In this document: positions 5,528 through 55,690 of the stretch, piece after piece
How the letters are laid out: every line of letters begins with the position of its first letter
Numbering within the stretch: position 1 is the first letter of the stretch
Origin: Takakia lepidozioides
Lineage: Eukaryota; Plantae; Bryophyta
Reading direction: 5' to 3'
DNA: 64,000 nucleotides
Assembly: GCA_030704615.1 (NCBI GenBank)
Contig: CM060732.1
Location: forward strand, 1,798,001-1,862,000
Position numbers and translations under genes: made by a program
Notes under the pieces: model-generated
The model's database searches: none
What the model was told of the DNA's origin: nothing
The model's input: only the letters and a program-made list of their open reading frames with translations

Positions 5528-6437
5528 CTACCAAGGCAAACAGAAAATGCACAATGATCACTCCCACCTTTGTGATGGGAGCTTCACTCGACTATGACAA
5601 CTGCATCGCATGATCCACATCTTTGACAACCTTGTGTCCACAACCACATCCCTTAGCAGCCGCATCCCAGATTACATTGAGTTGACGGATTCTCTACTGT
5701 GCCAGTAATATCGCATGGGTGATTTAAGAGTCTTTCGGAGAAATTAACAAGAAGAGAGAGGAGCAATATGCAAGCCCAGAAGGAGTTGCACAGTGGTACT
5801 CCAAACATGCAATGAAGAAAAGCAGAAAAGCAGAAAAGCACGGAAACATGCAACTGCATGAGGTGGTGCAAGCTAGCTAACCTCAGCATATTACAAAGAC
5901 AGATTTATACTCTAAATGACTATCACAAGAAGGCAAAAGAAAATTACTTGTACCGACAAGGCATGGTCTTGGTCGATGCAAGGAGAAAAGAAAGGCCCTC
6001 CGCGCTCAAGCACGCGGGGACATCACCCGCGCTGCCTCTCCCGATTATTTTCGGGCATTTTGGGCAATTTCCGAAAGAATTGATGACGATGACGTGGCTA
6101 CGAAACATGGCAACGGAATGTGGCGACGATGACGTGGTACAAAAACACCCTATTCCTGCTCTATGCTAAACTAGCTTCCGACCTTCGGTCATCGCTAGAA
6201 TAACAGCATAGAGTTAGCCCCACCAAGGCCTAGGAGGGTGGACCCACCTTTGCAATGGGATCCAGTGGACCCTACCTTATTGGACCCGGGCAAGTCAGGG
6301 CCAAGGGACCCTACCTCATTGGACCCGGGCGGGCGAGGGGTCGCGAGGGGTCTACCCCAAACCATCCAAGCGGCCCGCACTAGCCGGGCCCACCCCTACC
6401 TTAAAGACCCAATTAATTTTTAATGACTTGCCGTTAA

Positions 6438-7449
6438 GGTCTGGGGTGGCATTTTTGGCCCCAAACGCGGAGGTTTCTCAGGCCGAAGATCAGGCCGCGG
6501 GCCCGCCACTGACATGGTCACCATTCTGCATGCAGAATGGCTTCCGGATCACAAACTCGCCATTTTGTACTAGATAACAGGCAGGGGTTGGCATATTATG
6601 CCTCCACGTGAGGCGTCCCGGGGCTCCCTTGACGGCTTAGGGGGAGGCATAATATGCCAACCCCTGCCCGTTAACTGGCGTAAATGATTTTTGTGGCAGA
6701 TTATGCGAGGCCCCTGATTGGCAGCAGGCCATAATGACGGGCCACAAAGTCAAACAGCCGAATTACAGCAGTCAAACTGCCGGTTATGAATGCAGAATGC
6801 GCCAGCACCCTGAATGGCGTGGAGCGACGATCTTCTGCAATTTAATTTGCCTCATAAAACGCATAATCTGCCCCCAAAATCCTTTAGGTGTGCGTAAAAC
6901 CTTCAGATTTTTTGGCTTTGTTAAAATTAGGGCTTCCCTGACAGGAATTTTCCCTCGCACGTGATTACAGGTTTTTGCCCCGGGACGGGGGCTGTAATCC
7001 CAGATTATGGAATCTGTCCCCTGACAGGCTGGCATATTTTATGGATCTATTATTCTTTAATATTGGGCAGACGATTTTCAAACTTGGGCAGCGAGCTACA
7101 ATGAAGTGAAATTGAAACCCTAGTGGCAACGCAGAGGAGAAACGGGCAATTTCAGAAACGGGCAGCTTCGTTTTTACGAGAGGTAAAGCCCTCGCCCTTG
7201 GATTTTCCTGGATTTTCGACCCCTGCCCTCGGGCTCCGCCCTCGTCTGGGGTGCATTTTCTGCAGTTCTCTTTTCTGGAAGCCACTCTGTAAGAGGTAAA
7301 GCCCTGGCCCCATGACTTTCCTGGATTTGAGGCGCCTGTCCCGAGGCCGAGGGCGGGGGTCGAAAATCCAGGAAAGTCCTCGGGCGAGGGCTTTACCTCT
7401 TACAGAATGGCTTCCAGAAAAGAGAACTGCAGAAAATGCACCCCAGACC
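6438..7449. mobile_element. Non-autonomous TIR element with TTAA target duplication (Kolobok-like termini)
   Basis: TTAA(6434-6437)|GGTCTGGGGTGGCATTTT ... AAAATGCACCCCAGACC|TTAA(7450-7453). Internal ~62-bp inverted repeat 7244-7304 / 7387-7448. No transposase ORF. Confidence 0.7.
6580..6668. repeat. Hairpin-forming inverted repeat with ~26-bp arms
   Basis: GGCAGGGGTTGGCATATTATGCCTCC (6580-6605) and GGAGGCATAATATGCCAACCCCTGCC (6643-6668), with a 37-nt loop. Confidence 0.85.
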
Positions 7450-7803
7450 TTAACGCCATTGAAGGCGCCGTGGAGCATCATTCTGCTCGGTTCGCTGCCC
7501 GTCCTCGAATTCTGGCTCGCCCGTTAGCGCCTTCTATAGTACATCTGTGCTTCCTTGAGAAGGTGCCACGTCATGGACGCAAATGGAGTTCTGACCGCAA
7601 AGGTCTTGCGCGGTGGGGTCCATTGATCCGTGTAAGAGAACGAGCGGTAGGTGCAGCCAGAGATGTTGAGCAAGGCGGGCCGAGATGGAGAGAGGAGAGA
7701 TATTTGGTGCTGGCTTCCTTGCGAGAAGGTGTTAGGGTAGAGCATACTGGTGGTATGTGATAACTGGAAGAGAGCTCTGATAGGCACATGCGTGACAGGA
7801 GCA

Positions 7804-10800
7804 ATGGCATGGAACGTACCAGGAGTATCACCATCACCACACCTCCATTCGTCTTCCGCTCTCCTCTCCTGCCGATACTCCTCGACTTCTCCAGCATACA
7901 AAATCGTTTGCAAGTCCTTTTTCTGGAGATTTCTCCCCTGCACACCTGCTACAAGTCGCACCGATGGGCAACGGTGTTGTGAGTTTTCTCTCTGTTTTCC
8001 CCTGATCACCTTTACCATATCCCCTGTGTCTACCTAGCATGAGGTTACTTGATTACCCCTTCTCCTTTTTCTAATCCAAGAAAGAAAAGAATGGTGTGGG
8101 TTGGGGCTAGCGTAACCTTCTGTGCCTCCTCCACTGTTGGCCTTACTAGTTCCTATCAGGAGGTGGGCCCTTTCAACAGCAGTTTGTATCTAAGGGGGTA
8201 GCTTTGTTTCCTGGTTTCACATGCTAGATTCTCAGGATCCCCTAAGTACCGAACTTGGCGTGGCAATGCTTGTGGCTTGGTGGACCTGCCCGGGAAGTTT
8301 CCAAAGTAGGCCACGATGGGATTTGAACCCTATGCTGTCTCTTTGAAGCTGATGCAGATCAGGAAGGAAAATGAGGGTTAATGCCACACAGCCATTTGTA
8401 GATTGGAGGTCAAAGCTGCAGAGTCGTTTGTTTGGCGAATGGGCCTCTTTTTAGTGTTGGTTTCACGTCCTGCTCTTGAATAGGTTGCACACAGTCTTGG
8501 TGGAAGCCAAGGTTCGTGTTATAGTCCTTCTCGAGTGACATGTTGTCAACAGTGCCATGAAGTTGGAAACATTGAACTCAGCAACTGGAAGTGTTCATTG
8601 TACGTCTTCACACCACATATATCAAACATATATCTCACAACAACGCTGGTACCAGCCGCAATACTCGGCAATAATCATTATTATTTCTAAGTCAAAGAAA
8701 ACCGTCAGTGGACTGTCTCAAATGAGGGCTGACTAGGAAATGAGTTTTGGATTTTTGTTGATTCTTTCCGATTTGGTTGTTTGACACTTCCAGTGCCAAG
8801 ACATTCTTTGTTGAGGTACAATGGGCTGGTAAGGAAACCAGCGCTGGAGGTCAATTCAGTCAAGCATAACAGGCAAAGGAATAGCGGCAGTGCTAACTCC
8901 GCAGGTATGGCACTATTTTGTGCTTTCTATATTGCCTCAATTGGTGGTTTTGAAAGGAAAATAGGTTGTTACATAATATGTTAATGGTTGGAATGCTTGC
9001 CACTGTAGAGATGCTGTCAGGAAAGGGCCTAGAAGATGTAATGGTTGACAATCTCAGTGTACAGTTGCCATACGTAAGGACGTGTGTTTTGGTCTTAAGT
9101 TTGACTCTCTCTGGTTCCAAAAACAGGTAGCTAACATTTGAGTCAAATGTGGTGTAGCTGAAAGGATTAGTGTGGTCTAAAGTCTTGCGATGCAGCACCT
9201 AAGGCACATGCTGTTCATACTTCTGCTGTCAGCTTTAGGGAGAGAGAATGTACTCATAAGACATCGTTTGCCGTTGCCTTGTGGCCATTTGCGCGCCCAG
9301 TTTGAGCGGAACACAAAGGGACAGAAAGTACCTTCGTCAGTGGCTGATGCTGGTAGTATGACTTACCTTGAAATAGACAATTGAGCCAAGTTTTCCAGAT
9401 ATCCTCTAGAAATCCTTTCACACAAACATCAATTTGCTGTGTGTGGTTGCCCGATAACTAGACCCCAAAAGGGCCTGGGCTTTTGGCTCAGCCTTGAGAT
9501 TTTCAAAGTTGGTAAACAGAGGTATAGGAACAATTCCCTTGATGGATTTGAAGAGGGTGTCTCTCTGGTGAGAGTACCAGGACAATGAATCAGAAAGTGG
9601 ATATTGTCTTCAGGTTGCCGCACAACAGGCATTTTCAATCCCCCTTTCCTCTCTGTGTCTGTTTGCTGTTCAAAAGTAGGCTTCTCACTAAGAGTGTAAA
9701 TTTCAGTCTAGTGCCGAGGGTTGGTAAACCCTTGAGGTCATCCATGAGGGCCATGTCACAGACTGGAAACAAGTTCAGGGAGGTTTTGTGCCTAACTTCA
9801 TTTTTGTCAGACAATTTCCTGGCAACAGACATGGCTTTGGACTCTACAGCCTCTACGTCAGATTTCTCCAGCAGGGTCAAGACTTGCGGGCTTAGATTCA
9901 GATCCTTGAGATTCTCTTCTACTCTCTTCCGCCAGGACTTAGCCTGTTTGACAGGGTGATCCTGCTTCCAAGATATAGAGTCGATTAACTTAGGATGTCT
10001 GATATTAGACATGTTGCAGCTGACCCCACCATCTGACCTTGAATTGATCTCATCGGGAGCTTAGGAAGGGGATGCCAAACTCACCCCGAACAGCCACGTT
10101 GGCTGTTTTGGAGCATGCTGACATGCACTCCTTAAGCACCCCTACTTGAATGGATTCTGGAGACTTAGCCTGGTTGGAGTAATGGACCCATTCTGCAGAT
10201 GCGTACACCAAGGCAGGCCTAATAACGCGGCAAAGCATGGTTTTTTTTACTTCAGAGTTGATCCCTTTGCACTGGAAAGGTCAAGGTCAAAGTATCTCTT
10301 CCCGCCCTGAGTTTAAATTTCAGTCTAGTGCCGAGAGCGGGTAAACCCTTGAGGTCATCCATGATGGCCTCACCCATGTCACAGACTGGAAACAGTTCAG
10401 GGAAGTGCCTAACTTCATTTTCATCAGACAATTTCCTGGCAATGGACATGGCTTTGGACACTACAACCTCTATGTCAGATTTACCCAGCAGGGTGAAGAC
10501 TTGCGGACTTACATTCACATCCTTGAAAATGTCTTCTACCTCCGCCAGGACTTAGCCTGTTTGACAGGGCGAGCCTGCTTCCAAGACATAAAGTCGCTTA
10601 ACTTAGGATATCTGATATTAGTTATACATTGCAGATGACCCCACCATCTGACCTTGAATTGATCTCGGCGGGAGCTTAAGGGAGGAATGCCAAACTAACC
10701 CCGAACAGCCACATCAGCTGTTTTAGAGCATGCTGACATGCACTCCTTGAGCACCCCCACTTGAATGGATTCTAGAGAGTTAGCCTGGTTGGAGTTTTCA

Positions 10801-13800
10801 ACCCACACTGCAGATGTGTACTCCAAGGTAGGCCTAATAACATGGCAAAGCATGGTTTTTTGACGTCAGAGTTGATCCCTCTGCAGTGGAAAAATTTAGT
10901 GAGCCCCAACACTCTTTGCGCCTGGTCGATTGAACAACTTTTTGTATATGCGCTTCCCAATTACAGTTGGAGGAAAACTCAGTGCCAAGGTATGTGCAGG
11001 AAGGGGGGACATGAATCTCTTGGCTTCCCCACTGCCACTTGATGTCGCCTCCTCCCTCCCCATGGTCCACCACTGCACATTTACTGACGTTAGCCTCTAG
11101 CCCCCAAACTTCAAAGTATCTCTTTGCGCAATCAATCAACTCCTGAAGATTGGATGGAGTCTCCCCTATGCCTGCGATGTCATCCGCAAACATAAGGGCT
11201 GGTATGGTGGCATATTCCACCCTTAACCCAAATCCCTCACTTTCCACATCCTCGAGTAGTTGATAGATGAAACCAGCCCCATTTACAGTAACAATGGCAG
11301 ATCAAAGAAGTGTACAGCCATTGGGATTGATAAGAGGAGCAGAGGGGAGAGGGTAGATCCTTGAGGTACACCTTGGTCTATGTCAAAGAAGTTAGACTTC
11401 TGTCCATTAACAGTGACACAGGTTTTGGTGTGAGCATACAAGTTATGGACCACTCTCCACATCTTTCCCTTGATCCCAGATGACCAGAGTCGGAGGCATA
11501 GACCATCTCTCCACACTGTGTCATAATCCTTTTTGACATCCAAGACAAACACAACAGTATGTTACCCTTCTTTTTTCTTTCCCCGGATAATTTGGCTTAG
11601 AGTGAAGATATGATCCACACAGCCCCTGTTTCTCCGAAAGCCAGCTTGGCCTTCATGGAAACAACCTCTAGACTCCAGATCAACCTCGAGACGAGTACTT
11701 ATAACTCTGCAAAATATCTTGCCAACTGCTTTGAGAAGTGTGATGCCTCAATAGTTCCCTGACTCTTCTCTGGCACCTTTCTGACAATGACCCCCTGTCG
11801 CCATCATTTCAGTCCTCCAGATAAGGTTAAAGAGAAGTACAAGGGCCTCTATCATGGGGTCACCACTATGCTTATAAGCTCATTGACTATGCCATCAGGT
11901 CCACCAGCTTTACATCCGTTTAAAGTTCAAGTCCTTCCACAATCTCAGAAGAACTAATGGGAGCGTTGTAACCCTTTGAAATATACTCCAGTTCATCAGG
12001 GCTGTCTTGAATTAGAGAAACAGTTTTTGCTACTCTGTCCTTCCTTTCTTCAGAAAACCCCTCACTGTTAGACCTAGCATTTCTGCAAAGGGTACAGTAG
12101 TGAGTTTCAAAGGTTTTGACAATGTCAAATGTTGAAGTCACCACTGCATCGTTAGTAGTCCCCAGTGCTTGTACTTGCTGACAATTTTTCGGCTTGTATA
12201 GACGTTGAAGGGCCAACCAGAATCTCTTGTCATTACCACCATGGTGATTTGAGTTTATTTCACTGTATGACTTGTCCCAATAATTTCTTCTGAGACCTTA
12301 CGAGCTGATTGATATCTTTGCAGATCTGGTAGTACCTAGCCCACAGTTCTTTGTCGGCCTTAAATTGCAGCACTCTTTATAGAGGTCTTGTCTCTTGGCT
12401 ATCTTGAGTTTGATCTCATTGGTCCACCAATTGACAGCTCTACCGCAGACAATTAGTTTCCTCCCAATGATCTTGTCAGCCACAGAGGATACGAAGCTGT
12501 CCCAAGAATCCACTGCGCTTTCGACTTCATTTCTTGCCTCACCAGAGTGAGACTGAACATCTTGGATTGAATGGACAAAGTGAGGGAGAGCCTCTTGCAA
12601 GGCCTGGACATACTCAGCCTTGACCTCTTCATTTCGGAATATTTCAATGCGCCACTTCTGAATTGAACGTCTCACAGATCTCTTGCTGTTGGGGAAACAC
12701 CTTTTGATCTCAGTTCAAACCAGAAAGTGGTCAGAGGTACCAATATCAGTTCTATCAATCAACGCATTGGCACACTGGGGACACAAAATCTTGTCCACTA
12801 TGATATAATCCACAATGGATCATTCTCCAGTTTGGACTTCCTCCTGAGTCCACTGCACAAGGTCTCCTTTTGACCTATTATTCAAGGTCAAAAGCTGAAG
12901 TTCTTCCAGACAGTTTATTAACTGTCTTACATTAGAATTCAGCTCGTCCTCTCCAAAAGGCCCAATGTTATCATCCTGGTGCACATAGACATCTAAAGAG
13001 GGAGAGACCCCAAACTCTCCAACTAAGTCCAATGTACTAACCTTACCCAAGGCAGAGTGCTTCTGGTCAAAACAAAAAAAGACACGAGGTCACAAGGCCA
13101 GCATTTAGTCACAGAGACCTTTCTCTACTCCCATATCATATCCACCCAATGGCAATAGGCTTCCTAGAGGGCAGGGAGAGTTGGTGGTGGGGGGGGGGGG
13201 GGGAAGAGAGAGAGAGAGAATGTACTCATAAGACGTTGTTTGCCATGGCCTTGTGGCCATTGACCCCGTGCTCAGTTTGAGCAGAACACAAACGGACAGG
13301 AACTCAGGAATTCCTCATGGATTTGAGGAGGATGTCCCTCTGGTGAGAGTACCTAGGACATTGAATCCGAAAGTGAATATTGTCTTCAGGTTTCCTGCAC
13401 AACGGGCATTTGCAATCACCCTGTCCTCTCTGCTTCTGTTTGCTGTTCAAAGGTAGGCTTCCCGCCCTGAGTTTAAATTTCAGTCTAGTGCCTAGGGTGG
13501 GTAAACCCTTGAGGTCATCCATGATGGCCTCTCCCATGTCACAGACTGGAAACATTTATTTCACTGTATAGCTTGTCCCAGTATAATTTCTTCTGAGACC
13601 TTACGAGCTGATTCATATCTTTGCAGATCTGGTAGTACCTAGCCCACAATTCTTTCAAATTGCAGCACTCTTTATAGAGGACTCGTCTCTCGGCTATCTT
13701 GAGTTTGATCTCATTGGTCCCTATTCGGTAACTTCAAAGCCCGGGTTGGCAAAGGTCTTCATCAGGATGATACCATTGGGCCTTTGGTGAGGACGAGCTG

Positions 13801-16800
13801 AATTCTAATGGAAGACGGTTAATAAAGAAGAACTTCAGCTTTTGACCTTGAATAGTAGGCCAAAAGGAGACCAAGTGCAGTGGACCCGTGAGACAGCCCA
13901 AACTGGGGATTATATCATAGGGGACAAGAATTTGTTTCCCCAGAGCGCAAATGAGTTGATCGACAGAACTCTGACCACTTCCTGGTTTGTACTGAAATCA
14001 AAAGGTGATTTCACAACAGCAAGAGATCTGTGAAACGTTTTATTCGGATGTGGCGCATAGAAATATTCCAAAATGAAGAGGTCAAGGCTGAGTATGTCCA
14101 GGCCTTGCAAGAGGCTCTCCCTCACTTTGTCCATTCGCTCCAAGATCTTCAGTCCTGCTCTGGCAATGCAAGAAATGGCAAAATCTGCATACGAGGTAAT
14201 TGCCCCCCCTTTGCAGAAGGGTTGGCTGTCCAGGAGCAACCATTGGCTACCTAGACGGCAAACAATCCATATGCAAAGGGCTGGCTTGCGGCTGGGCACT
14301 TTCAACTTCTTGGGGCTGTCTAACCAAAGGAAACAATTTGAAGTGGGACAATCAAAGGGTATAATTGGTTCGGCAAGAGGTGTGCACTTAAGGCAGCCTC
14401 TGCCAAGCGTGGTCAAAAAGGTGTTGGCTTCCTTGTCCGTGATTACTTGTGTGACAACTGTGAAATCATCAACAAGGGTCTGCAGTACGAGCACAGTATC
14501 TGGAACTGATTTTGAAGGGCGGCATGAGTACGACGGACCTATTTGTGGGTTGTGTTCACATGCCCACAGAGGGGAACTTTAGTGCTGACGTCGACAAAGA
14601 CTTCAAAGACGTAAAGCTGGACTGTGCTAAGTTCCTCGCACCAATTAACAGCTGTACCAGACAATTAGTTTCCTCCCAATGATTTTGTCAGCCACAGAGG
14701 ACACAAAACTCTCCCAAGAATCCACTGCGCTCTTTATCAGCAATTTGTTGACCTCATCCAGAAGGTTCTTTGTGGCTGGGCTTGCTTCTTCTGGAAGAGA
14801 AGTCTGCAGGATCTCTGCAAGACCAGTTCCCTCTGGAAAGGCACTCAAAAATTTCTCCACTCGAGGTGTTTGCCCCACTCCTAGAAATGCATACTAAAGA
14901 TCTTTGGTGGCATCCTCGATTCCTTGACGAATTTGAAACGTGGACAATCTCATCGAAAAAATCCAAGAGCTTGGGAAGCAGCTCGGAATCTAAAGGAGGA
15001 GACAGATAACTCGGTTCTCCCTCCCCTTAAACGCCATCACCAGCGTGGAAGACCTAGCGAGATAGAAGGATTGGCAAACCATTCAGAGTACCATATCCTT
15101 AAGTCACACGAAGCTCAGGCTCAGCACACTTAGAGCCAGCTTGTGTGTCTGGCTGCTTGGTATCAACCTCATCCAGGGCATCAAACTGGTTAGAAACTTT
15201 CAAGTTAAGTCCCCACCCTTGGTTGTCTTCCTAGAGCGCCTCATTGAATCACCAATGTCTAAGACTGCTCTCCAGCCAGTCAAGGGACGAACTTCTTGAG
15301 CTTGATTTGATGTGAGACTCTATTTGTAGCATTTTTAGACATTGCAACCTTCAAAGTACCTCTGGCACATAATCCAAGAGCAGGTAGTTTTAAAGGACAC
15401 AAAGTCCATCCTGGGATTCACCCCAAAAACTACACACGAAGGCCGAGGTTTGGCGTAAGTAACTAATTCCCAGGAATCCCCCTGGGAGCGTTGTTATCGA
15501 GATGGAGAGATTGTACTCATAAGACGTTGTTTGCCGTAGCCTTGTGGCCATTGACCCCGCTCCCAGTTTGAGCGGAAACAAAAGGGACAGAACCTCCCTC
15601 TGTCAGGGGCTGACATTGGTAGTAAGACTTACCTTCATATATAGAATTAATCCGGGTTTTCCAGATATCCTCTAGAAATCCCTTCACAGAAGCATCAATC
15701 TGCTGTGTGTGATTTGCCCAAAAACTAGGCCTCAGGAGGGCCTGGGCTTTTGGCTCAGCCTCGAGACTTTAAAAGTTGGTAAACAGAGGTACAGGCACAA
15801 TTCCCTTGATAGATTTGAAGAGAGTGTCTCTTTGGTGAGAGAACCCCGGACAGTGTATCAGAAAATGAATACTGTCTTCAGATTGCCCACACAACGGGCA
15901 ATTGCCACTCTCCCTTTCCTCTCTGCTTCTGTTTGCTGTTCAAAGGTAGGCTTCCTGCCCTGAGTTCAAATTTCAGTCTAGTGCCGAGAGTGGGTAGACC
16001 CTTGAGGTCATCCAAGATTTCCAATTGCCATTGATGATGAATTTGTACACATTGGCGTGTTCATTAGGTAGTTCAGGGAAGCTTCCTGCCTAACTTCATT
16101 TTCATCAGACAATCTCATGGCAACAGACATGGCTTTGGACACTACAGCCTCTAAGTCAGATTTATCCAGCAGGGTCAAGACTTGCAGTTCCAGGTCCAGG
16201 TCCTTGAGAATCTCTTCTACTCTCTTCTGCCAGGACTTAGCCTGTTTGACAGGGCGGTCCTGTTTCCAAGATATAGAGTCGATTAACTTAGGATATCTGG
16301 TGTTGGACATATGTTGCAGCTGACCCCACCATCTGACCTTGAATTCATCTCGTCAGGAGCTTAAGGACGGAATGCCAAACTCACCCTGAACAGCCACATT
16401 GGCTGTTTTGGAGCATGCTGACATACACTCCTTATGCACCCCCACTTGAATGGATTCTATAGACTTAGCCTGGTTGGAGTTATCAACCCATATTGCAGAT
16501 CCGTACTCCAAGGCAGGTCTAATAACGCGACAAAGCATGGTTTTTCTTAACCTCAGAGTTGACCCCTCTGCAGTGGAAAAATTTAGTGAGCACCAGAGCT
16601 TTGCCCTTGCCAGTTTGAACAACTTTCCGGATATGTGCATCCCAATTACAATTGGAGGAAAACTCAACGCCCAGGTAAGTGTAGGAAGGGAGGACCGGGA
16701 TCTCTTGGCTACCCCACTGCCACTTAAGATCACTTCCTCCCTCTCCTCTGTCGTTGAATGCTACCACTGCACATTTTGCTGACATTAGCCTCTAGCCCCC

Positions 16801-42740: not shown

Positions 42741-43897
42741 TCGAAACACTTTCCCAAGACCCCTCTGGAATCGGCAAGGGTTGTAACAGCCCCGCTTGCT
42801 TTTTGTATTTGTTCCGGTTTTGTTGGCATGTGGTGCATGTCTTGACATACTCCTCGGCCTCCTCCCTCAGTTTGGGCCAGAAATACTCTTTCTTCAAGAG
42901 TGCCGTGGTGCGCTTGGCTCCGCCGTGGCCCGCAAGCGGGCCATCGTGGCATTCCCTCAAGAGACTATCTCTGATCCCCCCCTTCGGCACGTAGAGGCGC
43001 TTTTGCTTGTACCAGAGCAGTCCATTGTGCAAGTGGAATTGCGATTTAACCCCCATCCTCAAATCCCGCATCACGGACTTCGTCATCTCATCCTTACGGT
43101 AAGCCTTTCGGATCTTCCTTTGGAGCGCCGTCTCGCCCTTGTACACCAACATGAGCTGCTGTTTTCTACTTAAAGCATCGGCCACCATATTGTCTCGTCC
43201 CGGTTTGTACTGGATATCCACGTCAAACACTGCCAAAGTGCCTTGCCACCTAAGTTGTTTTGGGACAACTTAGGATGCGTGGCAAAATACTTCACCGTGA
43301 CATTGTCCGTGAACACCTTTACCGGGTTGGAACCAACATAGTGGCACCAAAGCTCAAGGCAATGCACCACCGCCTTCATTTCTTTCTCGTGCGTAGGCCA
43401 CCGTCGCTCCACTTCATTCAGTTTCTTACTTTCGTAAGCCACTGGACGTCCATCCTGCATGAGCACACCCCCAATTGCGAAGTCCGACGCATCTGTATGA
43501 ATCTCAAATGGACGGTCGAACTCCGGGATTTTCAGGACTGGAGCTTCCGCCATCCGCTGCTTCAACTTGGCAAAGGCTTGGCCACAAAAGGTGTTTCATA
43601 CCCATACCTTGGACTTACACAGAAGGTCTGACAGCGGCCCCGCGATCTTGGCAAAATTTCTCACATACTTTCGGTAATAGGATGCGAGTCCTAGGAAGGA
43701 TCGCACTCCCGGGACCGAAGTCGGAGGCTCCCAGTCCAAGATCTCCCTCACTTTTCTGTCATCCATTTTGATCCCATCCTGTGTAATCACATGCCCTAGG
43801 AACTCCACTTTTGTGACCCCAAATTCGCACTTTGAAGCTTTGGCGTACAGCTTCCCTTCCCGCAATTTCTGGAACACCTTTTTGAGGTGCTCCAAGT
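42741..43897 (-). pseudogene. Gypsy pol: RT C-terminus, RNase H and integrase zinc-binding domain
   Basis: KCEFGVTKVEFLGH, VRSFLGLASYYRKY, IHTDASDFAIGGVL, YKPGRDNMVADALSR and HDGPLAGH..CTTCQ, with stops and frameshifts. Confidence 0.92.
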
Positions 43898-44189
43898 CCT
43901 GGGGGGTGCACTCTTTCTAAACTGTGCGTATCGCGTGCGTTCGTCGCCTAATAAAAGAACCCCCTGTATACGGGTCCTTGGATAATTTATACCCCCTCTG
44001 TACATATTTTTTGAAGATTATAAAACCCCCTCCTGTAAATATACAAAAATTTACAATTTTTAAAAAGTACCCCCTTCTATATGTATATTCTCATTTTCCA
44101 TCATTAAAAATAACCCTCCAATATGTATATGTATGTTTTTATATTATATCGAATTTATTCATTTAAAACGTAATAAAATATAACAAATT

Positions 44190-47100
44190 AATTAAAAAAA
44201 AATTTGCCTTTGATAAAGTTGTCAAAGACTTTTCGGTCATTTGCATCAAGTATATATGTGTTTGACTTGACATTGTACTTTAAACATGCTAACGCGATAA
44301 TGGAATCCAAATCAACCATCATGTTATCCGTCAAATCGTACGTATAGACCCCTCCTCGAAATTTTTTGGTACCATGCTAACCCAATCTCCATATGAGAAG
44401 GACGCTCCAATAAATCAACAGAATCCCTACATTCTACAAACCGCTTATTGATTTTCTTCCGCATTCTTTGAACCCTGCCCAAATACCAAGTGCCTTTGGT
44501 TGCTCCTCTGCAGGTTTTCCCTGGTCTGCCTTTCCTGTTTGTAGTTTGGATCGCAGTCTCCTCATCAACAAAAAATACAGCACAATCCGAACCCAATCCC
44601 AAGCTCGTGGCTTTGTTGCTGGTAGTTGGTTTGTTTTCTTGGCAAAACAACATCGATGCACTTCTTACTCGTGTCAATCTATCCTTGGATAGAGTAGGGT
44701 TGCCATTGAGTTGGCTAACCAAAGTGCTTTTGAATATGGTCTTCCCGTCTACTTTGACAAATGGAACCACCGCCTTCGGTCCATCTTTCTCTTGTTCAAA
44801 CTCATCAATAACAGCATCTAGAGTATGTCTCAATTCACTCTGAATAAGTACCTCTTCCGCATGATCATCCAAAGGTTGGCTCAAAACATCCTCCATTGAA
44901 TTCGAAGGCCCGCACACCAATTCATCTTCCACAACCTCATTTTGAATATGTGTCATTTGTCTCTCAATTGTCCATGGCTCATTCCACCAATCCAAGTTTG
45001 TCGTTTTGTTTGGTTTCATCCCAAGTTTATGGCATAAAAGTGGCGCTTCTAGAAATCCAGTTTTCAAAGCCTCCACAATGCAATCATCCGATTGGACAGT
45101 AGAAAAGTCGGACAAATCAGCAAGGGGGATACCTGGCTTCTTCTCCAAAAAAAACCAAATGTGTTCTTGTTTCTTGTGAGCTCTTGAGAACTTGGGTCCT
45201 TTTGGATTCACCTCGAACTCGGATATGCGTGTTAATGCTCCCGCACTCTCAATCAAATCACACCCGTCATATGTCCTCTCATTCCGTAACATACCTCCCA
45301 CTTTGCTGAAGAATATTTCACACACATCTGAACCAACAAGGCTCAAAGAAACTTGCACATGATTAAACTTATCCTTGAACAATTTGATAAGTAGAACCAC
45401 GTAGTGGCATGAAATTTGTAAATCCAAGTATGCTTCCCTGCTAATGAAGAAGGATTTCAGATTATACACCTCGTGGTGGAATAACCACAACTTCCACAAT
45501 CTGAAAAAAAACGATACCTTCGCAGCAGATTGTACCCTCTCACACAATGACATGTGAGGAGACAAAAAAATGTCGATGTAGCATGAAATGATGTATAGGT
45601 AAATTTCAGTACCTTTGGTCGTCTCCCTTCGATGATTCACAGTTGATTGTAACTCCCTCAAACAAGCTTGCACCTTCCGAGATGCCAGTCGTTGAGCTGC
45701 TGCCCAATTCTGTCGATCTTCTCTTTTGATATCACATTCCCGAAGTCCATGCTTGTCCACTGAAAATGAATGGTAGACCAATAACACATGATTCAATGTA
45801 GCAACCTCATCACCCAACACCAAAGTCCGTGATGCACTGTCCAAGGGATTTTTTCCCATTGTGGATGAAGTCCTGATCATGGAGTCCGTATATATCTCCC
45901 CCGTTGCACACTCGACCTGTAAACAACCATCCTTCCCAAGGGATGCAAAATCTACTTCCAGCCCCATTGGCATAATCTTCTAACATCACTTTTCTCCTCC
46001 TACTATCTCCGTCTGAAGCATGCCCAATTATAGGCCCAATCACGTCCCTCACATATTTGTCCCACAACTGTCTCACCACTTCCCATTGTGATCTCACAAA
46101 ATTGTTGTCAAATCTATTGCAAGTGAGCTGGATTACCAATACCAATCGAGGTAATCGTACATGTAGAGGATTTGCTATCAACACTCTGGCGTAATGGGCA
46201 ACCACATTGTTTTTGAATGCCTCCACAATATGTTCGTACCCTGATTCCCCTTCTCCCACTTGCACCACAAAATTTGAAATACATACATGGTTGTCTTGAA
46301 GCCCACAGAACCCGAGAAGGGTGTCATCCCTAGCAATCCAACGTACCAATCGCTTCACAACAGTTTCATCTTCGGCCACCATCACTGGGATGCTTCCCAT
46401 TGGAATATTTGCATCTTCCATCACATCTCTGTAAATTCCAGCCACATGCTGAAATATATCATCCTTTCTCCCGCTCTGTACTTCAAACCTTTCCTCAAAG
46501 ACCGTCTTGTAGTATCAATAGAAGGACCCCCCACATTTGAAGCCAAAAAATGATGCAATTTCGGACCCCCCCAAAGCTGCACATCTCAAACATTGTTTTG
46601 TGCTAGTACCATACCTCTTCCCTTGTGGAGACCTGTCAATATTCTTGCCCATATCAACAAGAAAATCCCACAAACTTTCTTTTCCTTCAAAACCCCCCCT
46701 CCTATGTGCATCAACAATATCACGACAAAATTTGAGAACATCTCCTCTTTCAATTGCCTCAATCCCAGACTCCTTCAAACTCCTACATCGCACAGACAAG
46801 GATGCCACTTTGGTCCTGGCCTCCCACAATTTGAACCTCAACTGTCTCAACTCCTGTCTGTTTTTGTAAACTTGTTTGACAATCTCGGCATTTCCAAGAT
46901 ATGACAACCTTCTTCCCTTGCCAGTATCTCTCTCCCCTCTACATTCCATGGCACCTCTTTCTCTATATACCCTCATTCTGAAGTCATTTTCCAAGGGAAT
47001 GGAAGAACATGCTGAACATCTCAAGTTTGGAAATGGCTCCCCATCCAATGACACTCTAAAACAATCCGCGTGCCGAAACGTACCAACAACCTTATGCTCT

Positions 47101-48516
47101 TGATTGGTTAGAGTGATGGTTGCATTTGTCAACGGCTCGACATACCACTTCTTTCCTCCCTTGCTATCTTGAAGGAATGGTTTCAGACTTATTCTCTGCT
47201 GGTTGTACTCCCACCATTCATCCCATAGGCCCCAACACAAACTGTCTCTTCCTTTGTTGCATTGGGACCTTTGCTGTAATTTTCAATCCTGATCAGATCT
47301 GCCCGTTGGGCAGCGTCAACACAAGTGTATGGAGTTTGTGACGAGGATGCTCCCATTGTTGATGCCACAATTGGATTGTCAAGTGGTGGGGACGGCAACA
47401 CAGGTTGACTGACCAAGAAAGAGCTTAGATCCCGTTGCTTTACATCTTTGGCAATCATAGGCTTTGGAGGCCTTCCTCTCTTTTTGCACAGTCCGTCACT
47501 ACTTCCAACCTTCTGGCAAATCTCTGCATCGACATGAGTTTTTCCTTTCACATGCTCTGTCAAAGAAGATTGCAAAGAACCTGTCCTTGGAAACAAGAGT
47601 AGCCACTTTGAATCAAGTGGGCACCTAATCCTTATGGAACCCAACTGCGAATAGTCTCCAATTGTGGCTTCCACAATCTCAAATCTGTTTCCAGGATTGT
47701 CCTCACAAAACCGAGCGACTTCCTCTAATGCCTCCTTCACCCTGTTCTTCTTTGCATCTAATGCTTCATCTGCATTTACAGGGCTGATGACACATTGTGA
47801 TGAACCCTTCCCATGACGCCTCTCATAGGTTATGCGATGCCCCTCACTCCTCAAATGAGACATAAAGTTTGCACATGCATCATATGGTTTGTTTTTCCCA
47901 GACCGTGCATAAACATCCTCACACTCAACACACCATATGTGGAACATTGCTTGTCTTGTTGATCCTTTGTCATCAGCTCAAACTTGTCACATCGTCCTTC
48001 TGCAGAGATTTTCCTTTCAACGGCTCTAATCTCTTTCTGCCATTTTTGAATATCGTTGGATGTAGCCAACGTGCTGCACAATCTACCAGATCTCTGCTGA
48101 AGTGCATGCTCATGTGCATGGTCTTCATTTCCACCATCGCCAGCAAATGGTGTATCAGGGTCCATCCTCATCTTGGTAGACACTGGTGCTGGGTCCTCGC
48201 CTGGTCTGTCCTCATGCAAGATCGTAGAACCACTGGAAGATAGAGGTCTTTTCAATCCTTGGTCCCCATCATTTTGGTCTGAAATCTTAATGTGTACAGT
48301 ATCCCCTTTCAGAACCATCCTCTCTTCTTGCTTGGCTGAAAGGACACTACCCCCCATGGAAAGGAAATGAAATTTTGCTGAGACAAGCTCATCACCTATA
48401 ATTTTTGCTTGGATGCATTTGTATGTGACACCTTGCATAGTGAACACAGAACCAAGCCTGTTTGGTGATGCATCTCCTCCAACGAGCAGGACTTTTACTT
48501 CCAACTCTTCTTCCAT
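44190..48516 (-). pseudogene. Large DDE transposase, P-superfamily-like, with several frameshifts
   Basis: Consecutive ORFs 48516-47851, 47947-47189, 47240-46515, 46445-45810 and 45973-44324, with a shifted tail to ~44190. Motifs AEDET, HASDGD, DFIHNGKK (DxxH), DRQNWAAAQRL and GSDVCEIFFSKVG, plus N-terminal zinc fingers and an RGRP AT-hook. Confidence 0.8.
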
Positions 48517-49569
48517 GATGAGTTCACCTGCAAAATGCAATGAAAACATTTCAAATCAGACCTTGATAGACCAATAACAAAGCACCCGGGTTGGAAGGTT
48601 CCAAAGTCCTGTTTTATACAACCCTATAGGCTGTCCAAGCAGGGACTACGTTGATAAGAGGATGAAATGTATACAGAAGCAAGTACCTGATTGATGAGTT
48701 TGACGTTGCTAATTCTTGCTGCTGCTATTGACCAAATGTTGCTACTTCCACTGCTGGTAGCCCTCTTGGGTGATCCTGAACCCACAGTCCATCCTTGCAT
48801 TAGCGGCTAGCCCTCCCTCCACACTAACATATTTAAATACAAAGTTCTGTCAAACTCCCTACGATGTTGCATGAAGAAAGCTCACCTTGTTGACAATATT
48901 GTCCCACCGTTGTGGATCATATTTATAGAGCTCCTGCCAGCACTGTTCCTTGCTCCAAATCTGGCCCTCTTGGATGATTTTGCACCCACGATCCTCTCCC
49001 TACATCAACAGCTACCCCTCCCTCCACACTAACAATGCGTACATCATGCCTCTGCAGCTGCTACAGTGGCTTCCAGTTGACCATCTACCCATGCAGGTTT
49101 CTTGTAGCTATCCTTCCACATGGAGTCATAGGTAATCTAGAGCTTGGAATCCGGCCATCTGGAAATTTAGGGACGACTCTGATAACAGGGAAAAACAGGC
49201 TGAAATGTGTTGAAGAATGTACCTTCATTAGCAGTCCCTTGTTCTATCAATTGCATTGTTGCCGCTGCTATTTCCAGTTGACCATCTACTCACATTGTCC
49301 CACCACTGACTGGGGTCAGAGAAGTATTCATTCCTTGAAAGCTTCTCTCCATCTGTGTTATCTTTTTTTAGGTACTGTCATGCTGTCACCTTGGCAGTAA
49401 CTTGCAAAGTCACTCCAAAGCACCGCAGATCCACCCAACGAGCTAACTTACAGAATTCAATACATATGCTTCAGGGCTGAGTCTGATGAGAGGAAAAACA
49501 GGCTGAAACGGGTCAAACTAGAAGGTGGCCTCAGGCTGAAATGTGTTGAAGAAGGTACCTTCATCAGAT

Positions 49570-51235
49570 CATTTCGTTCGGGCATTTTGATGAACACTTG
49601 CTGAGCATCAACACACCCCACATTTGCAATACATGCTGAGAAGGGCAGTTCCCACTTTGCCATCCGACTCAAATCCAGTTTTGATCAACCCTGCATGGAG
49701 GCCCTTGCCCTGTTCCAAGACTATTGGGGTAGTACATGCGTTCAAGATGCTCATGAAGGTGATTTTCATTTGGCTCCATACCTTCTCGTTGCATTTGCTG
49801 AAAAAGTTTGAACGCCTCCTCACCATGCCCTTGCTATGTTAATCCTGCAATCATCGCATTCCATGAGATCACATTTCTCTTAGGCATTTTGTCAAACACT
49901 TGACAGGCATGCACCACATTTCCGCACTTGCAATACATGCTCACAAGGGCATTCCCCGCCTGGATATCTGACACCAAAGCAGCTTTGATGATGCTTGCAT
50001 GGAGCAGCTTGCCCTATTCCAGAGCTAGAGGGTTGGTGCAAGCAGTAAGGATGTTAATGAAAGTGGCCTTGTCAGGCTTCACACCTTCTCCTTGCATGCG
50101 TGCAAAGAGTTTGAATGCTTCTGCACCTTGCCCTTGCTGAACTAATCCTGCAATCAAGGCATTCCATGAAACTACATTTCTCCGAGGCATCTTATCACAC
50201 ACTTGGAGCGCATTAGCCACACTCCCACACTTGCAATACATGCTCAGATGGGCATTCCCCACTAGAATCCAGCAACAATGATGCAGGCCTGGAGCCAATT
50301 GCCCTGCTCCAGAGCTGCTGGGAGGGAGCACGCATTGAGAATCCCAATAAATGTAACCTCGTTAGGTTTCACTCCTTCTAGTTGCATATGTCGAAAGAGG
50401 TCGAATGGTTCTGCACCATGGCATTGCTGAGCTAATCCTGCAATCATTGCATTCCATGAGATCACATTGCGTTTGGGCATTTTGTCAAACACTTGGCGTG
50501 CATGCACCACACTCCCGCACTTTGCAATACATGCTAATAAGGGTGTTTCCAACAAAAATGTCTGGCTCGAATTCATTATTGAGAATGTGGGCATGAACCC
50601 CCCTTGCCAATTGCCAAAGCTTTTGTTTTAGCACATCCCTGAAGAAGGCAAGCACAGGTCTGCTCATATGTCTCCAAAACATTCCTACGACACCTATGCT
50701 TGGTAAATCTTTCCAACGTAATATTCCACGTGATCAAAGATCATTGAGGCATTTGTTGAACACTTGGTGAGCATCCCTGATGCTCGGCACTTAACATGCA
50801 TATTGACAAGGGTACGTGTTGAGTAGAAAAACATCTGTCGTGAACCCACTTTGGATAAAGTGAGTGTGCACCTGCTTTCCAGCTTTCGAGACCTTCCATC
50901 TTGATGCACTTAAGCAAGAGACAGACATACATATTTGAATTTGCTAAAATGCCTCCTTGGTTTAGAATCTGTAGAGCCTCTGTCAGGCTGTCTGCCGCAC
51001 AAAGTATCTTCACATGCCCAGAAATGTCAGAAGAGGCATTGTGGACTCCCTCTCTTGATCCTCTTTCAGAAGCTGTGGTCATGGTTGAGGTGCCTGATTT
51101 TATCATCTGTGCCGCTGCAATAGCTGCCTTTAGTTTACCATCTACCCATGTAGGTTTCTTGTAGCTACTGACCCACATGGAATCAAGGTAATCTGGAGCT
51201 TGAAGTCCAACCCTCGTGGATGAATCTGGACCCAC
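49570..51235 (-). pseudogene. PLS-class pentatricopeptide repeat (PPR) gene fragment inside the transposon
   Basis: Repeating SMYCKCGSV..ARQVFDKMP.RNVISWNAMIAG..QG.EAF.LF..MQ.EGVKP...TFI.IL.AC motifs with many frameshifts. Truncated at MPERND; no E/DYW domain is visible. Confidence 0.92.
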
Positions 51236-53363
51236 ACTCTATCCCTGCTCCTTCAGGCAAAAACATGGAAAAACTCTGATAACAGGGAAAAACAGGCTGA
51301 AATGTGTTGAAGAATGTACCTTCATTAGCATCGCCTTGTTCTATCAATTGCACTGCTGCTGCTGATGTTTCCAGTTGACCATCTACCCGCGCGATTGCTT
51401 GTAGCTATTGATCCACAGGGAAGCAGAAAGAAACTTGTGTTTGAAATCCGGCCCTCTTGGATGAATCTGGACCTCTATCCTTGGTCCTTAGCTATCCCTG
51501 CCTGTGGACAAATCATGAATACATCCTCAGCCTTGCTACTAGCAGCTGACACTGATGGCATGAAGTTCTTCCAGCAAACACCCTAAACCCTAATGATGAG
51601 AGGGCAAAACAGACTGAAATAGGTTGAAGAAGAAGGTACAGGGAGCACAAAATCACTCCAAAACCACCATAGATCCACCAACGAGCTAACTTGTAGAATT
51701 CAACATGAAAAAATAGGGACGACTCTACTAACAGGGAAAACAGGCTGAAATGCGTTGAAGAAGGTACCTTCATTAGCAGTGCATTGTTCTATCAATGTGC
51801 TGCTGCCGCTATTGTTTCCAGTTGACCATCTACCCACGAAGAGAAAACACAGAGGTTGAGAATATAGCTCCAACTAGACCACACTTCTGTTTATCTTTCC
51901 ACGATGATTCCTTCCAAGTTACTCCATAAGAACGATAGAAGGTCCAAAGTCATCCAGCTTCTGTGTTTATGTAGTGAGAAAATCACATTGAAAAAGAGAA
52001 CAATGACACTGCCATGAGACTAGGTTATGGGGGCCACAATTCTTTGCCAACATTGTCAGTGCTACTGTCTCTTCTGAGGACATTGTTACTTTTCATGGTG
52101 GCTTACAGTGCCACCTCAAGTTTCGAGGCTCTAGGTGCTTGATGGTAAGGTCAATGACATGTCTGTAAATGGCTGAAAACTGTACACTTGTCACTCCTCA
52201 GAGGCCTCCAAATACTTGAACCCAGGACTCCCAATAAGGTAGCCTCATGGAAACCAACCCAGAATACAGACATTGATCTAAATACCTCCTCATTTGTGTG
52301 CCACAGCTATGGGGTGGGGCCTCAAGCTTCCACAAACAGCAGCCTTGATCTATCTACTAGCTCTAAGATTATCTCTCATTGAATATTCGAATCCAGGAGA
52401 GGAGACACTTGAGACAGAGAGATAAAATGGTGTCTTGAGGCTTGTAGGACTTGTACTTTGAAAGTAATTTCGTTGACTACAATCCTTGCTCAAAGAGCAA
52501 GTATGGCGCCCACCTGAAGATTGCACACACAATCAGGAGATGTGTAGTTCATGCAGACAAATACATCACCAAAATCTGAAGCCTGCTAAAGTAGGTCCAA
52601 AGAACAACAAAAGGAGTAAGCTACCTATGCCTCCCCACACCTTCACTGTCGCTCCATTGCATCCCCGCCACCACTGATGCCATCGTCACCATTCACCTCA
52701 ACCAAGCACACATGGACATCTGCTGGTGAGGTGACGGTCTGCGCATGTCAGGCACCCATGTGAAGCCACAAGCACAACTACTGGAACCATTAACTACATG
52801 AAACCCCTACATTTCATAGTGCAATAAACCAACAAAGTGTACATAAAAACCACTAGAAATTGTGATAAAGGTACCAAGAGATGAAAACTTTGAGAACTAG
52901 AGAGGGAGAGTACCGAGACATAGGCATAATATGCTTCCCATTCCACCATGCATTCCTCCTTCTCCCATTGCCCCTTCACAAATTTCTCTGAATACCATCT
53001 GCTTCCCACCAAAAAGCAGAGATTGAAACATGGCCTGCTAAGACCTAGCTGACACGGAAGGGGCGCGGGAGGAGGGAAAAGAGAGCCCACGGGAGACAGA
53101 TCGCGGGGAGAAAAGAAAAAAAAGAAAAGCAAAACAACAGTGCATCGCGATTTGATCCCGCAGTGCATCACGACACATTCTACGTCCTTACCACTAGACT
53201 ACTCCTACAATTCAATTACCCCCTCCTGTAAGATTATATTTAAGGTGATTTAAACCCCCCTCTATATGTATAATGTTGTACATGGAGGGGTTTAAAATAC
53301 CCCCTCCTGTGCACGCACGTGGCTGGTACATATTGGCTGGAGTGCACCCCCCAGGCTCCAAGT

Positions 53364-55690
53364 GCTCTTCCTTCGTTTTCGAGTACACCAAGATGTCATT
53401 GATGTACACGATCACAAAGTCATCCAACCACTCCTAGAAAAGGCTATTCATTAGCGTGCTAAAGGTCGCGGGTGCGTTGGTGAGCCCAAAAGGCATCACC
53501 AAGAACTCATATGAACCATATCTTGTCCTGCACGCGGTCTTCTCATCATCTCCTTCCGCCACTCAGATTTGATGGTAACCCGAGCGCAAATCGATCCGGC
53601 TGAAATATTTTGCTCCTGCCAACCAATCGAAGTGGTCGTCGATCCTTGGCAGAGGGTACTGGTTTTTTATAGTCACCTTATTCAGAGCCCTGTAATCGAC
53701 ACACATTCGCAACGTCCCATCCTTTTTGTCTGCAAATAGCACCGGGGCTCCGTAAGGTGACTTACTCGGCCGGATGTACCCCTTTGACATTAGATCCTTG
53801 AGCTGGGCCTTCAACTCGACCAACTCTCTGTGGCTCAACCGGTAGGGTGCCTTGGCAGGCAGCTCCGATCCCGGTATCACCTCTATCTTGTGGTCAACTC
53901 CTCTTTGCGGTGGCAAGCCGCTTGGTAAATCCTCCAGCATCACATCCTGATATTTCTTCAAGATCCCCTTGATCCAATATGGGCTCGGCTCCCTATCGAC
54001 TTCTCCTTCCATTTGTCTTACGTAAAGCAAAAACTGGGGCTCATGTGGCTCCTCCACGGCCCACTCCTTTGCTGACAGCAGGTTTATTCGCCCTCCCACT
54101 CGGTTGGGCATTTCCGATACCTGTAAAACTTCGCCACCATTCCCACACGATAGCATGACTATTCTCTTGCGGCCATCTATGACCGCTCCGGATTTGCTCA
54201 AAAAGGTCATCCCCAAAATGAGATCCACTCCATTAATCTCGCAAATGGTGAAGTTTTCACGTCCCTCCCAACTCCCCAGCTGAAGAGGAACATTGAACGC
54301 CATCCTCGTCAACAATTATGGTTCTCCTCACCTCAATAGAGGCCCCCACATCACTTGTCGGGAGCCCTAGCTTCCATGCCGTTGTCGGTGTCATGAAGGA
54401 GTGCGATGTTCCTGTGTCCACCAACAACGACACGTTAGTTCCAAAAATTATCCCACTCACGAACATTAACTGACTCCCTTTACGCAGGGCGTCAGTCTCC
54501 TGATACAACTCACAATAGTAGTTGCCTACCTTGCAAGTCTTGGCGACCACCGCTTCCACCAAGCGGCTGATGGAATCTTCGGACAGCTCCGTGGTTGCCC
54601 GAGTCATGTTCAATTGTCGGGGTTTCGCGCACTTCTTGGCCATGTGCCCGGGCTCCCCGCAATTAAAGCACACTCCTTCGAAGGTTGCCTTCTGTCCGCC
54701 ATAAGCCGCCACACCTGATTTTTCTTTCGGAGCACCGGGTGCCACCTTGACGTGTGAAGGCCCTCCCTTCGATTTCCATGTGCCATTGTCGCCGCATGGC
54801 CTATCCCGCTTCTTTTCCGGTTGGAAGGAGTCACCCTCCCGCCAGGTCTTCTTGTGGTTTAGCTCCGTACGGCCATGTCTTTCGCCCCTAGGGACATCCG
54901 AGAAACATTCAGCCCTTTCAATTGCCTCGTTCAAAGTCTTAGGTGGCTTCTCCTCCAACTTCCGCCTGGCCCATGGGGCCAGTCCCGCCACAAAGTTGAA
55001 GACCATTTTTGGTTCTGCCATATCCGCGACTTCGAGCAACAACACATTGAAAGCCTGAGCATATCCCTGAATGTCATCCGTTTGCTTCAAATTCCTCACC
55101 TTGTCCCGGGCGAGCCAGGACGCGTTGAGGGGCACAAATTGTCTTCTCATAAGTTCCTTGAACACACTCCAGCTTAAGGTTTCTGGGTTTGGACCTTGGT
55201 CATGAAGGCGTTTCTGCCACCATTGTTGAGCATAACCCCTCAAATAGGTGGGAGCCACTTCCACCCGATCCTCGTCACTCAACTTGGTCGCTCGGAAGTA
55301 CTGCTCTAGCTCCAAGAGCCAGGTGTTGAGTGCCTTCCGATTTCGGACGCACTCGAAGGTGTCGGGTTCCTTAGGCTTCACCTTAAACTTTGCCTTAGTG
55401 GAAGTGGCATTAGCCGCCTTCAACATGTCCTTCAACGTCCCACCAAACTGCGCCAACAACCCTTCCCAAAAGGCTGCTGGCATGGGAGGCATCTGTTGGT
55501 CTGGCGGAGCCTCTGGAAAGTCCTCGGGCTCCGACTCCCAAAATTCCTCCCGTCCTTGTGCGGCCTTGCTTTCAGAAGCATGAATCGCCTTTTCCGATTG
55601 CCGCTTTGGTGACACGTCGCCCCCACCGGGCTCACCCGGATCATCATCTTTCGGGCCGTTTCGCTTTCGCTTTGTCTTGCCCAACCCCAT
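53364..55690 (-). pseudogene. Gypsy gag-protease-RT N-terminus
   Basis: ORFs 54257-55744 and 53563-54315, with CCHC knuckle, [35 protein letters not shown] and MPFGLTNAP. Confidence 0.93.

Follow-up and report, generated by a model that had tools for sequence, protein, structure and literature searches.

To our knowledge, a requirement for GTP is known for no transposases other than those of the P type. In the Drosophila P element transposase, D528 contacts GTP and E531 is catalytic (PMC7776569), with further GTP contacts made by K385, K400, V401, S409, F443, D444, and N447. The THAP domain of these proteins has been reported as restricted to animals (PMC7776569), and P elements have also been reported from fungi, in Allomyces and the Pucciniales (PMC5751038). 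Accounts of plant transposable elements (TEs) list seven superfamilies with terminal inverted repeats (TIRs), P not among them (PMC10741241), or tabulate plant TEs with no P entry (PMC9033089). Among the green plants examined, miniature inverted-repeat TEs of the P and Novosib types were found only in Chlamydomonas (PMC9641971), and when 1007 plant genomes were screened in 2025 with Pfam models for 17 superfamilies, P included, recently active elements came from seven others only (PMC12973397). The subject of the present analysis is a 9,458-bp unit lying within positions 43890-53363 of a 64,000-nucleotide stretch (hereafter, the window) of Takakia lepidozioides contig CM060732.1, where it was inserted as a single piece. 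An initial annotation had described it as a complete P-like DNA transposon in a land plant, and its remark that P elements are not a standard entry of land-plant catalogues agrees with all four surveys cited here. With a probability of roughly 0.8, the unit is a single, complete but non-functional copy of a cut-and-paste DNA transposon, and its transposase is related, across a deep divergence, to the P element and THAP9 transposases.

The ends of the element can be read directly. A 16-bp TIR, CCTGGGGGGTGCACTC, occupies 43898..43913 on the plus strand, and its exact reverse complement closes the element at 53340..53355 on the minus strand. Outside these lie the two identical copies of an 8-bp target site duplication (TSD), CTCCAAGT, at 43890..43897 and 53356..53363, which confirms the exact TIRs and TSD of the initial annotation, as well as its observation that the TIR starts with CC (CCTGGGG) and not with the usual CA. 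When up to three mismatches are allowed, CCTGGGGGGTGCACTC has just two matches in the window, namely the two element ends, and a weaker inverted similarity of the ends reaches 43 nt (to 43940) at 72%. Removal of the element and one copy of the duplication, joining 43897 to 53364, produces a continuous minus-strand Gypsy reverse transcriptase (RT) frame, so the empty site that had been proposed in this gene is indeed restorable. This uninterrupted reading implies that the 9,458-bp unit was inserted whole and duplicated exactly 8 bp. The target is an RT pseudogene, with its upstream part at 53364..53700 on the minus strand and its continuation at 43600-43889. Two in-frame stops occur in these flanking RT segments (43600-43889 and 53364-53700, minus strand), outside the insertion site. 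Because these stops lie elsewhere in the RT, the target was probably already decaying, and the element probably landed in a decaying Gypsy retrotransposon or aged along with it. Internal to the TIRs, subterminal repeats of the type ACCCCCTYYTRT are found at 43955..44140 and at 53210..53312, both on the plus strand, such that the right-hand repeats are in direct orientation relative to the left end. Five of the nine window matches to this motif fall within the two element ends, all on the plus strand, and nine matches were reached in 0 of 100 shuffles. These repeats are candidate transposase-binding sites.

Between the ends, a P-like transposase pseudogene of approximately 1,455 codons spans 44191..48555 on the minus strand in six open pieces, delineated from open reading frames (ORFs), their frames, and bridging homologues. 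In order from the N-terminus, these are an N-terminal piece (47854-48555), a Cys/His-rich, zinc-finger-like region (47192-47977), a piece with a CxxC motif, a coiled-coil-like stretch, and a helix-turn-helix (HTH)-like stretch (46518-47282), the N-terminal half of an RNase H fold with D, D, and DxxH (45813-46514), a piece containing a helical insertion domain, a D-x-x-E motif, a linker, and the start of a BAH-like domain (44327-45979), and the end of that domain (44191-44376). The coding breaks fall within 44359..47954, as seen from the frames and from contigs of the same organism. They comprise four frame changes, near 47954, 47290, 45847, and 44359, local frame shifts at 46464, 46583, and 46595, and an in-frame TGA stop at 46515-46517. 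The pieces were searched individually against protein sequences, and homologues were found to bridge the joins: P0095 of Adiantum spans the frame change near 47950, P0359 of Calypogeia and P0041 of Adiantum span that near 47290-47240, P0048 reads across the TGA codon, and several homologues span 45850 and 44350. Since the joins are bridged in this way, the six pieces belong to one gene and one protein.

Despite the broken frame, the catalytic residues are intact in the window copy. The N-terminal half of the RNase H fold bears its catalytic signature at 45861..46370 on the minus strand. The signature begins with the first Asp in AEDET (46368-46370), continues with the second Asp in SDGD (46011-46013), and ends with the DxxH motif, present as DQDFIH (45861-45872). 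These are followed by DRQNWAAAQRL, starting at 45716-45718, and by the third acidic motif, GSDVCE (45317..45328, within GSDVCEIFFS), in which an Asp stands three residues before the Glu at 45317-45319. Alignment A4, which comprises 50 sequences from diverse relatives, shows no variation at D161, H211, or E403 and at least 90% conservation at D42 and D208. In A3, a 13-sequence alignment of the core, the Asp that precedes the Glu by three positions (D400) reaches at least 90% conservation. Every motif that the initial annotation had listed for a transposase of some 1400 codons is thus found, including DxxH in place of CxxH and a P-like third acidic motif.

The strongest evidence for a P-type enzyme comes from the predicted fold of P0009, an intact homologue whose identity to the window pieces is 43-52%. 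The model, built from an alignment of 44 sequences, has a mean pLDDT of 78, with most of the core above 85. In Foldseek, the model matched the Drosophila P element transposase (6p5a) at E 1.7e-8, and all other chains had E values of at least 0.05. Superposition on Drosophila P with VIA-align gave Z 25.8 and an rmsd of 3.2 Å over 346 residues, pairing model residues 34-470 with chain residues 200-569. When the top 1000 Foldseek chains were re-aligned, P (Z 25.8) was followed by Transib (10.6), RAG1 (9.8), and Hermes (8.6). Across all 48,161 PDB representatives, the chains next to P were RAG1, ISCth4, Hermes, and Transib at 8.1-8.6, with Hermes at 8.4. Both the RNase H core and the inserted helical domain are included in the match. 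The model is helical between residues 265 and 470, and a P-type α-helical insertion splits its RNase H fold, as had been anticipated. The aligned range of P includes D230, D303, E531, and the GTP-binding insertion domain, with the alignment holding at the level of the fold. The D-x-x-E spacing of the family equals that of D528 and E531 in P, and the D528-equivalent Asp is conserved. In the ESM Atlas, TNP-like/THAP9 clusters were retrieved both by language-model features (0.92-0.95) and by shape (query-normalised TM 0.43-0.62). The nearest unannotated clusters belong to Basidiomycota and carry no Pfam domain (features 0.91-0.96; query-normalised TM 0.50-0.61), which suggests a non-animal branch of P-like transposases shared by the plant proteins and these clusters. 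With the Drosophila P match far above that of any other solved chain, the P-like interpretation is supported.

The transposase belongs to a large family. A word search with a 549-residue piece returned 99 relatives, none with a Pfam domain, among which the fern Adiantum nelumboides and the liverworts Riccia sorocarpa and R. fluitans are named. A second word search added the liverwort Calypogeia fissa, and the sequences it listed were close family members with no bona fide P sequence among them. Searched exhaustively as a profile, the catalytic core alignment A3 reached 3,314 cluster representatives at E<=1e-3, of which 516 were at E<=1e-30. The best 150 matches of that search were all close family members and likewise included no bona fide P sequence. 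Element boundaries could be recognized around two of these relatives. In R. sorocarpa (locus L001), an element at 6695-15872 has the termini CTCGGGGATGTCACT and the 8-bp duplication GATGTCTT. In an ENA contig (L002), an element at 4378-11135 has the termini CCCGGGGGGGGCACT and the 8-bp duplication ACTGGGGG. Loci L003 (Calypogeia) and L004 showed no recognizable terminal repeats or duplication. All three elements with recognizable ends, that of the window included, therefore have an exact 8-bp, non-TTAA duplication, in keeping with the 7-8 bp expected of a P-like element. They also have in common the terminus CYYGGGG...CACT (CCTGGGG, CTCGGGG, and CCCGGGG at the 5' end). The first C of the terminus, corresponding to a 3'-terminal G on the other strand, is the sole part of the 5'-CA start of P kept by the three.

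Several observations weigh against a P assignment. Sequence profiles hardly connect the family with P. The Pfam search of the window ORFs returned no match for the transposase, the P models PF21787, PF21788, PF21789, PF12017, and PF12596 included. Among relatives, PF21787 (TNP-like RNase H N-terminal) matched weakly in 2 of 17 members (best E 2.6e-4) and in 2 of a 50-member set (best E 0.027). PF21788, PF21789, PF12017, and PF12596 had no match in either set, and nine long relatives had no P-model match. The Pfam comparison advised by the initial annotation therefore bore out P only through weak matches in a few relatives, with none on the window ORFs and none passing the threshold in any family search. 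The same near-silence of the P models does bear out the earlier description of the family as divergent. Searches of PDB sequences with the 17- and 50-sequence profiles returned chance matches with no transposase among them. Neither the N-terminal ORFs of the window (450 residues) nor the N-termini of ten homologues matched a THAP or other Pfam DNA-binding domain. Given the reported restriction of THAP to animals, this absence may not matter for superfamily membership outside that group. The TIRs of the plant family are 16 bp with a CC/CT start, as opposed to 31 bp with a CA start in P. As for the fold, the model is a prediction for a homologue and not for the window protein, and its pairing with D230, D303, and E531 is one of folds rather than residue by residue. 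Solved structures do not exist for Kolobok, Novosib, MULE, or CACTA, and the search for the closest solved fold therefore cannot rank them against P. Finally, GTP use, the binding sites, and the function of the BAH-like domain are features that we infer.

These points give some standing to the reading in which the family forms a separate superfamily-level lineage, such as Novosib or an unnamed group, that is allied to P by common ancestry and by fold and lies outside the curated P superfamily. Such a lineage would account for the near absence of HMMER-level similarity to P and for termini and N- and C-terminal domains that are all unlike those of P, and a family with 3,314 cluster representatives at E<=1e-3 is very large in its own right. 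Novosib elements also make 8-bp duplications. However, a Z of 25.8 extending over both the core and the insertion domain is far above the values of 8-11 seen between recognized superfamilies (P compared with hAT, Transib, and RAG1), the nearest named Atlas clusters are all TNP-like, and DxxH, D-x-x-E, and the 8-bp duplication all match P. The 1007-genome survey, which included a custom Novosib profile, also found no Novosib among the recently active elements (PMC12973397). A separate lineage is therefore considered unlikely, though it is the alternative that fares best.

That a hAT, MULE, or Kolobok element has been misread as P-like is very improbable. The 8-bp duplication does not by itself tell P from hAT, since hAT elements also make 8-bp duplications. 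The initial annotation had named grouping with hAT or MULE as the result that would speak against it, and no such grouping was seen. A hAT element is excluded by the presence of DxxH rather than CxxH, by the lack of a hAT dimerization domain (PF05699) in the window ORFs and in the 17- and 50-member sets, and by the Z of 8.4-8.6 for Hermes compared with 25.8 for P. The length of the duplication excludes MULE, together with the lack of any match to PF10551 or PF00872 in the window ORFs, the 17- and 50-member sets, and the nine long relatives. Kolobok is excluded by the three 8-bp non-TTAA duplications and the 5'-CC/CT termini, as opposed to TTAA and 5'-RR...YY-3'. No KDZ Pfam domain was matched in any member searched. 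The weakest reading, by which the inverted repeats and duplication arose by chance around the ORFs of a decayed host gene, draws on the element being single-copy in the window and is barely credible against an exact 16-bp inverted pair with an exact 8-bp flank and a restored RT frame, related termini and duplications around homologues in two other species, and many near-identical contigs in the same organism.

The P-type copy in the window is dead, as its frame changes and TGA stop preclude it from making the transposase. Of the completeness claimed for the element, both ends, the duplication, and the whole unit stand, and intactness does not. In the best of the sequencing runs from the same organism, 70 of 135 contigs are at least 99% alike, as expected of a multi-copy sequence that recently diverged within the organism, and the window copy differs by approximately 1% from its abundant sisters. 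Relative to the window copy, contigs from such runs contain an additional 8 letters at 45847 and a single additional letter each at 46464, 46583, 46595, 47290, and 47954, and they lack one letter at 44359. As they differ by an insertion or deletion at or beside each frame change, the frame changes look private to the window copy. Parts of the gene are also present as contigs in two runs guessed to be RNA, which is not proof of transcription. A 1,627-nt contig of run X7, in which the terminal-repeat-like GAGTGCACCCCCCGGG is joined to position 44372 and 81 extra letters are present at 44953, shows that some sister copies are rearranged or nested and that the terminus occurs in a one-letter variant.

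Internally deleted derivatives are common for P elements. In Adiantum nelumboides, P0054, P0095, and P0092 combine N- and C-terminal parts of the transposase with no catalytic core, and could be internally deleted derivatives or artefacts of gene models. The first 230 transposase codons (47854-48555, minus strand) have homologues in Adiantum (P0095, P0092, and P0098) and match no Pfam domain. The N-terminal region as a whole consists of Cys/His-rich motifs, a coiled-coil-like stretch, and, ahead of the core, an RY..STK...GG stretch that is tentatively read as HTH-like. At the other end of the protein, the C-terminal 200 residues formed a β-barrel when folded alone (pLDDT 73). Compared with all PDB representatives, this model had mostly BAH domains in its top rows, at a middling Z of 6-7.8, including those of DIM2, Rsc2, AIPP3, EBS, MTA1, DNMT1 (BAH1), and ORC1b. 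Foldseek was weak on this domain (DNMT1, E 0.029), and Pfam BAH (PF01426) matched 1 of 16 members at E 3.6e-6. A distant member, P0114 (1,123 aa), has a PTM/DIR17-like Tudor domain at its end, residues 1066-1119 (Pfam E 9.7e-10). Different chromatin-reader-like modules may have been added to this transposase family.

From these parts, a mechanism can be proposed for the active enzyme. The Cys/His-rich and HTH-like parts of its N-terminal region would bind both the CYYGGGG...CACT termini and the subterminal ACCCCCTYYTRT repeats, and an oligomer of the enzyme would pair the two ends through the coiled-coil-like stretch. The DDE site would then cut and join the DNA, attacking the target strands 8 bp apart. 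By analogy with P, a guanine nucleotide bound in the insertion domain probably positions the 3'-terminal G, which is conserved because all three elements start with a 5'-C. The C-terminal BAH-like domain, absent from P and THAP9, may tether the enzyme to chromatin. The window copy itself, which cannot make transposase and carries fragments of host genes, is a cargo-carrying derivative that could be mobilized only by enzyme from other copies.

This cargo lies between the start of the transposase gene and the right end of the element, inside the moved unit. A broken pentatricopeptide-repeat (PPR) gene fragment occupies 49457..51235 on the minus strand, split over several frames. Pfam PPR_2 matched the ORF at 50014-50331 with E 4.5e-19 and the ORF at 50262-50594 with E 3.6e-15, and the region repeats with a period of approximately 300 bp. 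Farther toward the right end, residues 50-83 of the ORF at 52794-53171 match the TRIAP1/Mdm35-type (UPF0203) family (PF05254) at E 3.5e-6, with 27.5 bits for a cutoff of 27, corresponding to 52923..53024 on the minus strand. By its sequence, this appears to be another fragment captured from a host gene, in addition to the PPR piece. The PPR fragment is flanked by direct repeats of 60-114 nt (73-93% identical) at 49050-49460 and 51107-51703, approximately 2.1-2.3 kb apart, which suggests a duplicated segment or a nested insertion in the cargo region. The Adiantum protein P0092, which contains both transposase parts and PPR repeats, was considered as an instance of shared cargo and rejected, as its parts are in a different order and its PPR similarity is only generic.

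Taken together, the data support a deeply divergent, multi-copy family of P-type transposons in land plants, represented in liverworts, ferns, and Takakia, and absent from the plant surveys cited at the outset. The near-invisibility of the plant family to the Pfam P models could explain the absence of P from the results of the 1007-genome screen. A broader and more doubtful view, offered tentatively, is that land plants and probably basidiomycetes harbor an old, large, and recently active P-type branch that profile-based annotation has missed. In this branch, THAP would have been replaced by other zinc-binding modules and a BAH-like histone-reader domain gained that steers integration into particular chromatin, while guanine-nucleotide-assisted positioning of the ends was kept. 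If so, intact copies could serve as a new transposon tool for plants. On the narrower P-type reading, the family already extends both the host range and the architectural range of P-type transposases. It provides a profile and a terminal signature by which annotators could find a class of TEs so far overlooked in the genomes of bryophytes and ferns, and the apparent fusion of a transposase with a BAH-like domain could make chromatin-guided integration of DNA transposons testable.

Among known systems, Pack-MULEs and other cargo-carrying DNA transposons resemble the window element in that host-gene fragments, here PPR and TRIAP1-like, are moved along between terminal repeats. Unlike Pack-MULEs, the present carrier keeps a broken transposase gene and belongs to a different superfamily, and MULE/MuDR elements make duplications of 9-11 bp rather than 8 bp. 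The hAT elements Ac and Hermes resemble the plant family in the 8-bp length of their duplications, in terminal repeats that are short and accompanied by subterminal ones, and in an RNase H fold that contains an insertion domain. They differ in having CxxH and a C-terminal dimerization domain, and in the distance of Hermes from the model already described. Kolobok elements make 4-bp TTAA duplications and have 5'-RR...YY-3' termini, and the definitions of the DxxH and CxxH motifs have been given in the same work (PMC9587614). They have in common with the plant family a DDE transposase, a C/DxxH motif, and a core with no Pfam model, whereas the plant family has 8-bp non-TTAA duplications and 5'-CY...RG-3' termini. 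For fungal P elements, a possible link is through the Basidiomycota clusters, the nearest unannotated Atlas clusters to the plant family, a likeness of features and shape and not of alignment or tree.

The closest comparison is with Drosophila P and THAP9. The plant family differs from these in its nearly nil sequence-profile similarity, in its Cys/His-rich motifs in place of a detectable THAP domain, in the length of its protein (approximately 1,450 residues as opposed to 751), in its C-terminal BAH-like β-barrel where P has a helical, acidic C-terminal domain, and in its land-plant hosts. In contrast, the two share an RNase H DDE core with a large α-helical insertion domain at the same place, DxxH after the second Asp, and an Asp at -3 from the catalytic Glu. 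They also have in common an 8-bp target duplication, a transposon strand ending in a 3'-terminal G, short terminal repeats with subterminal repeats inside them, and HTH-like and coiled-coil-like stretches before the core.

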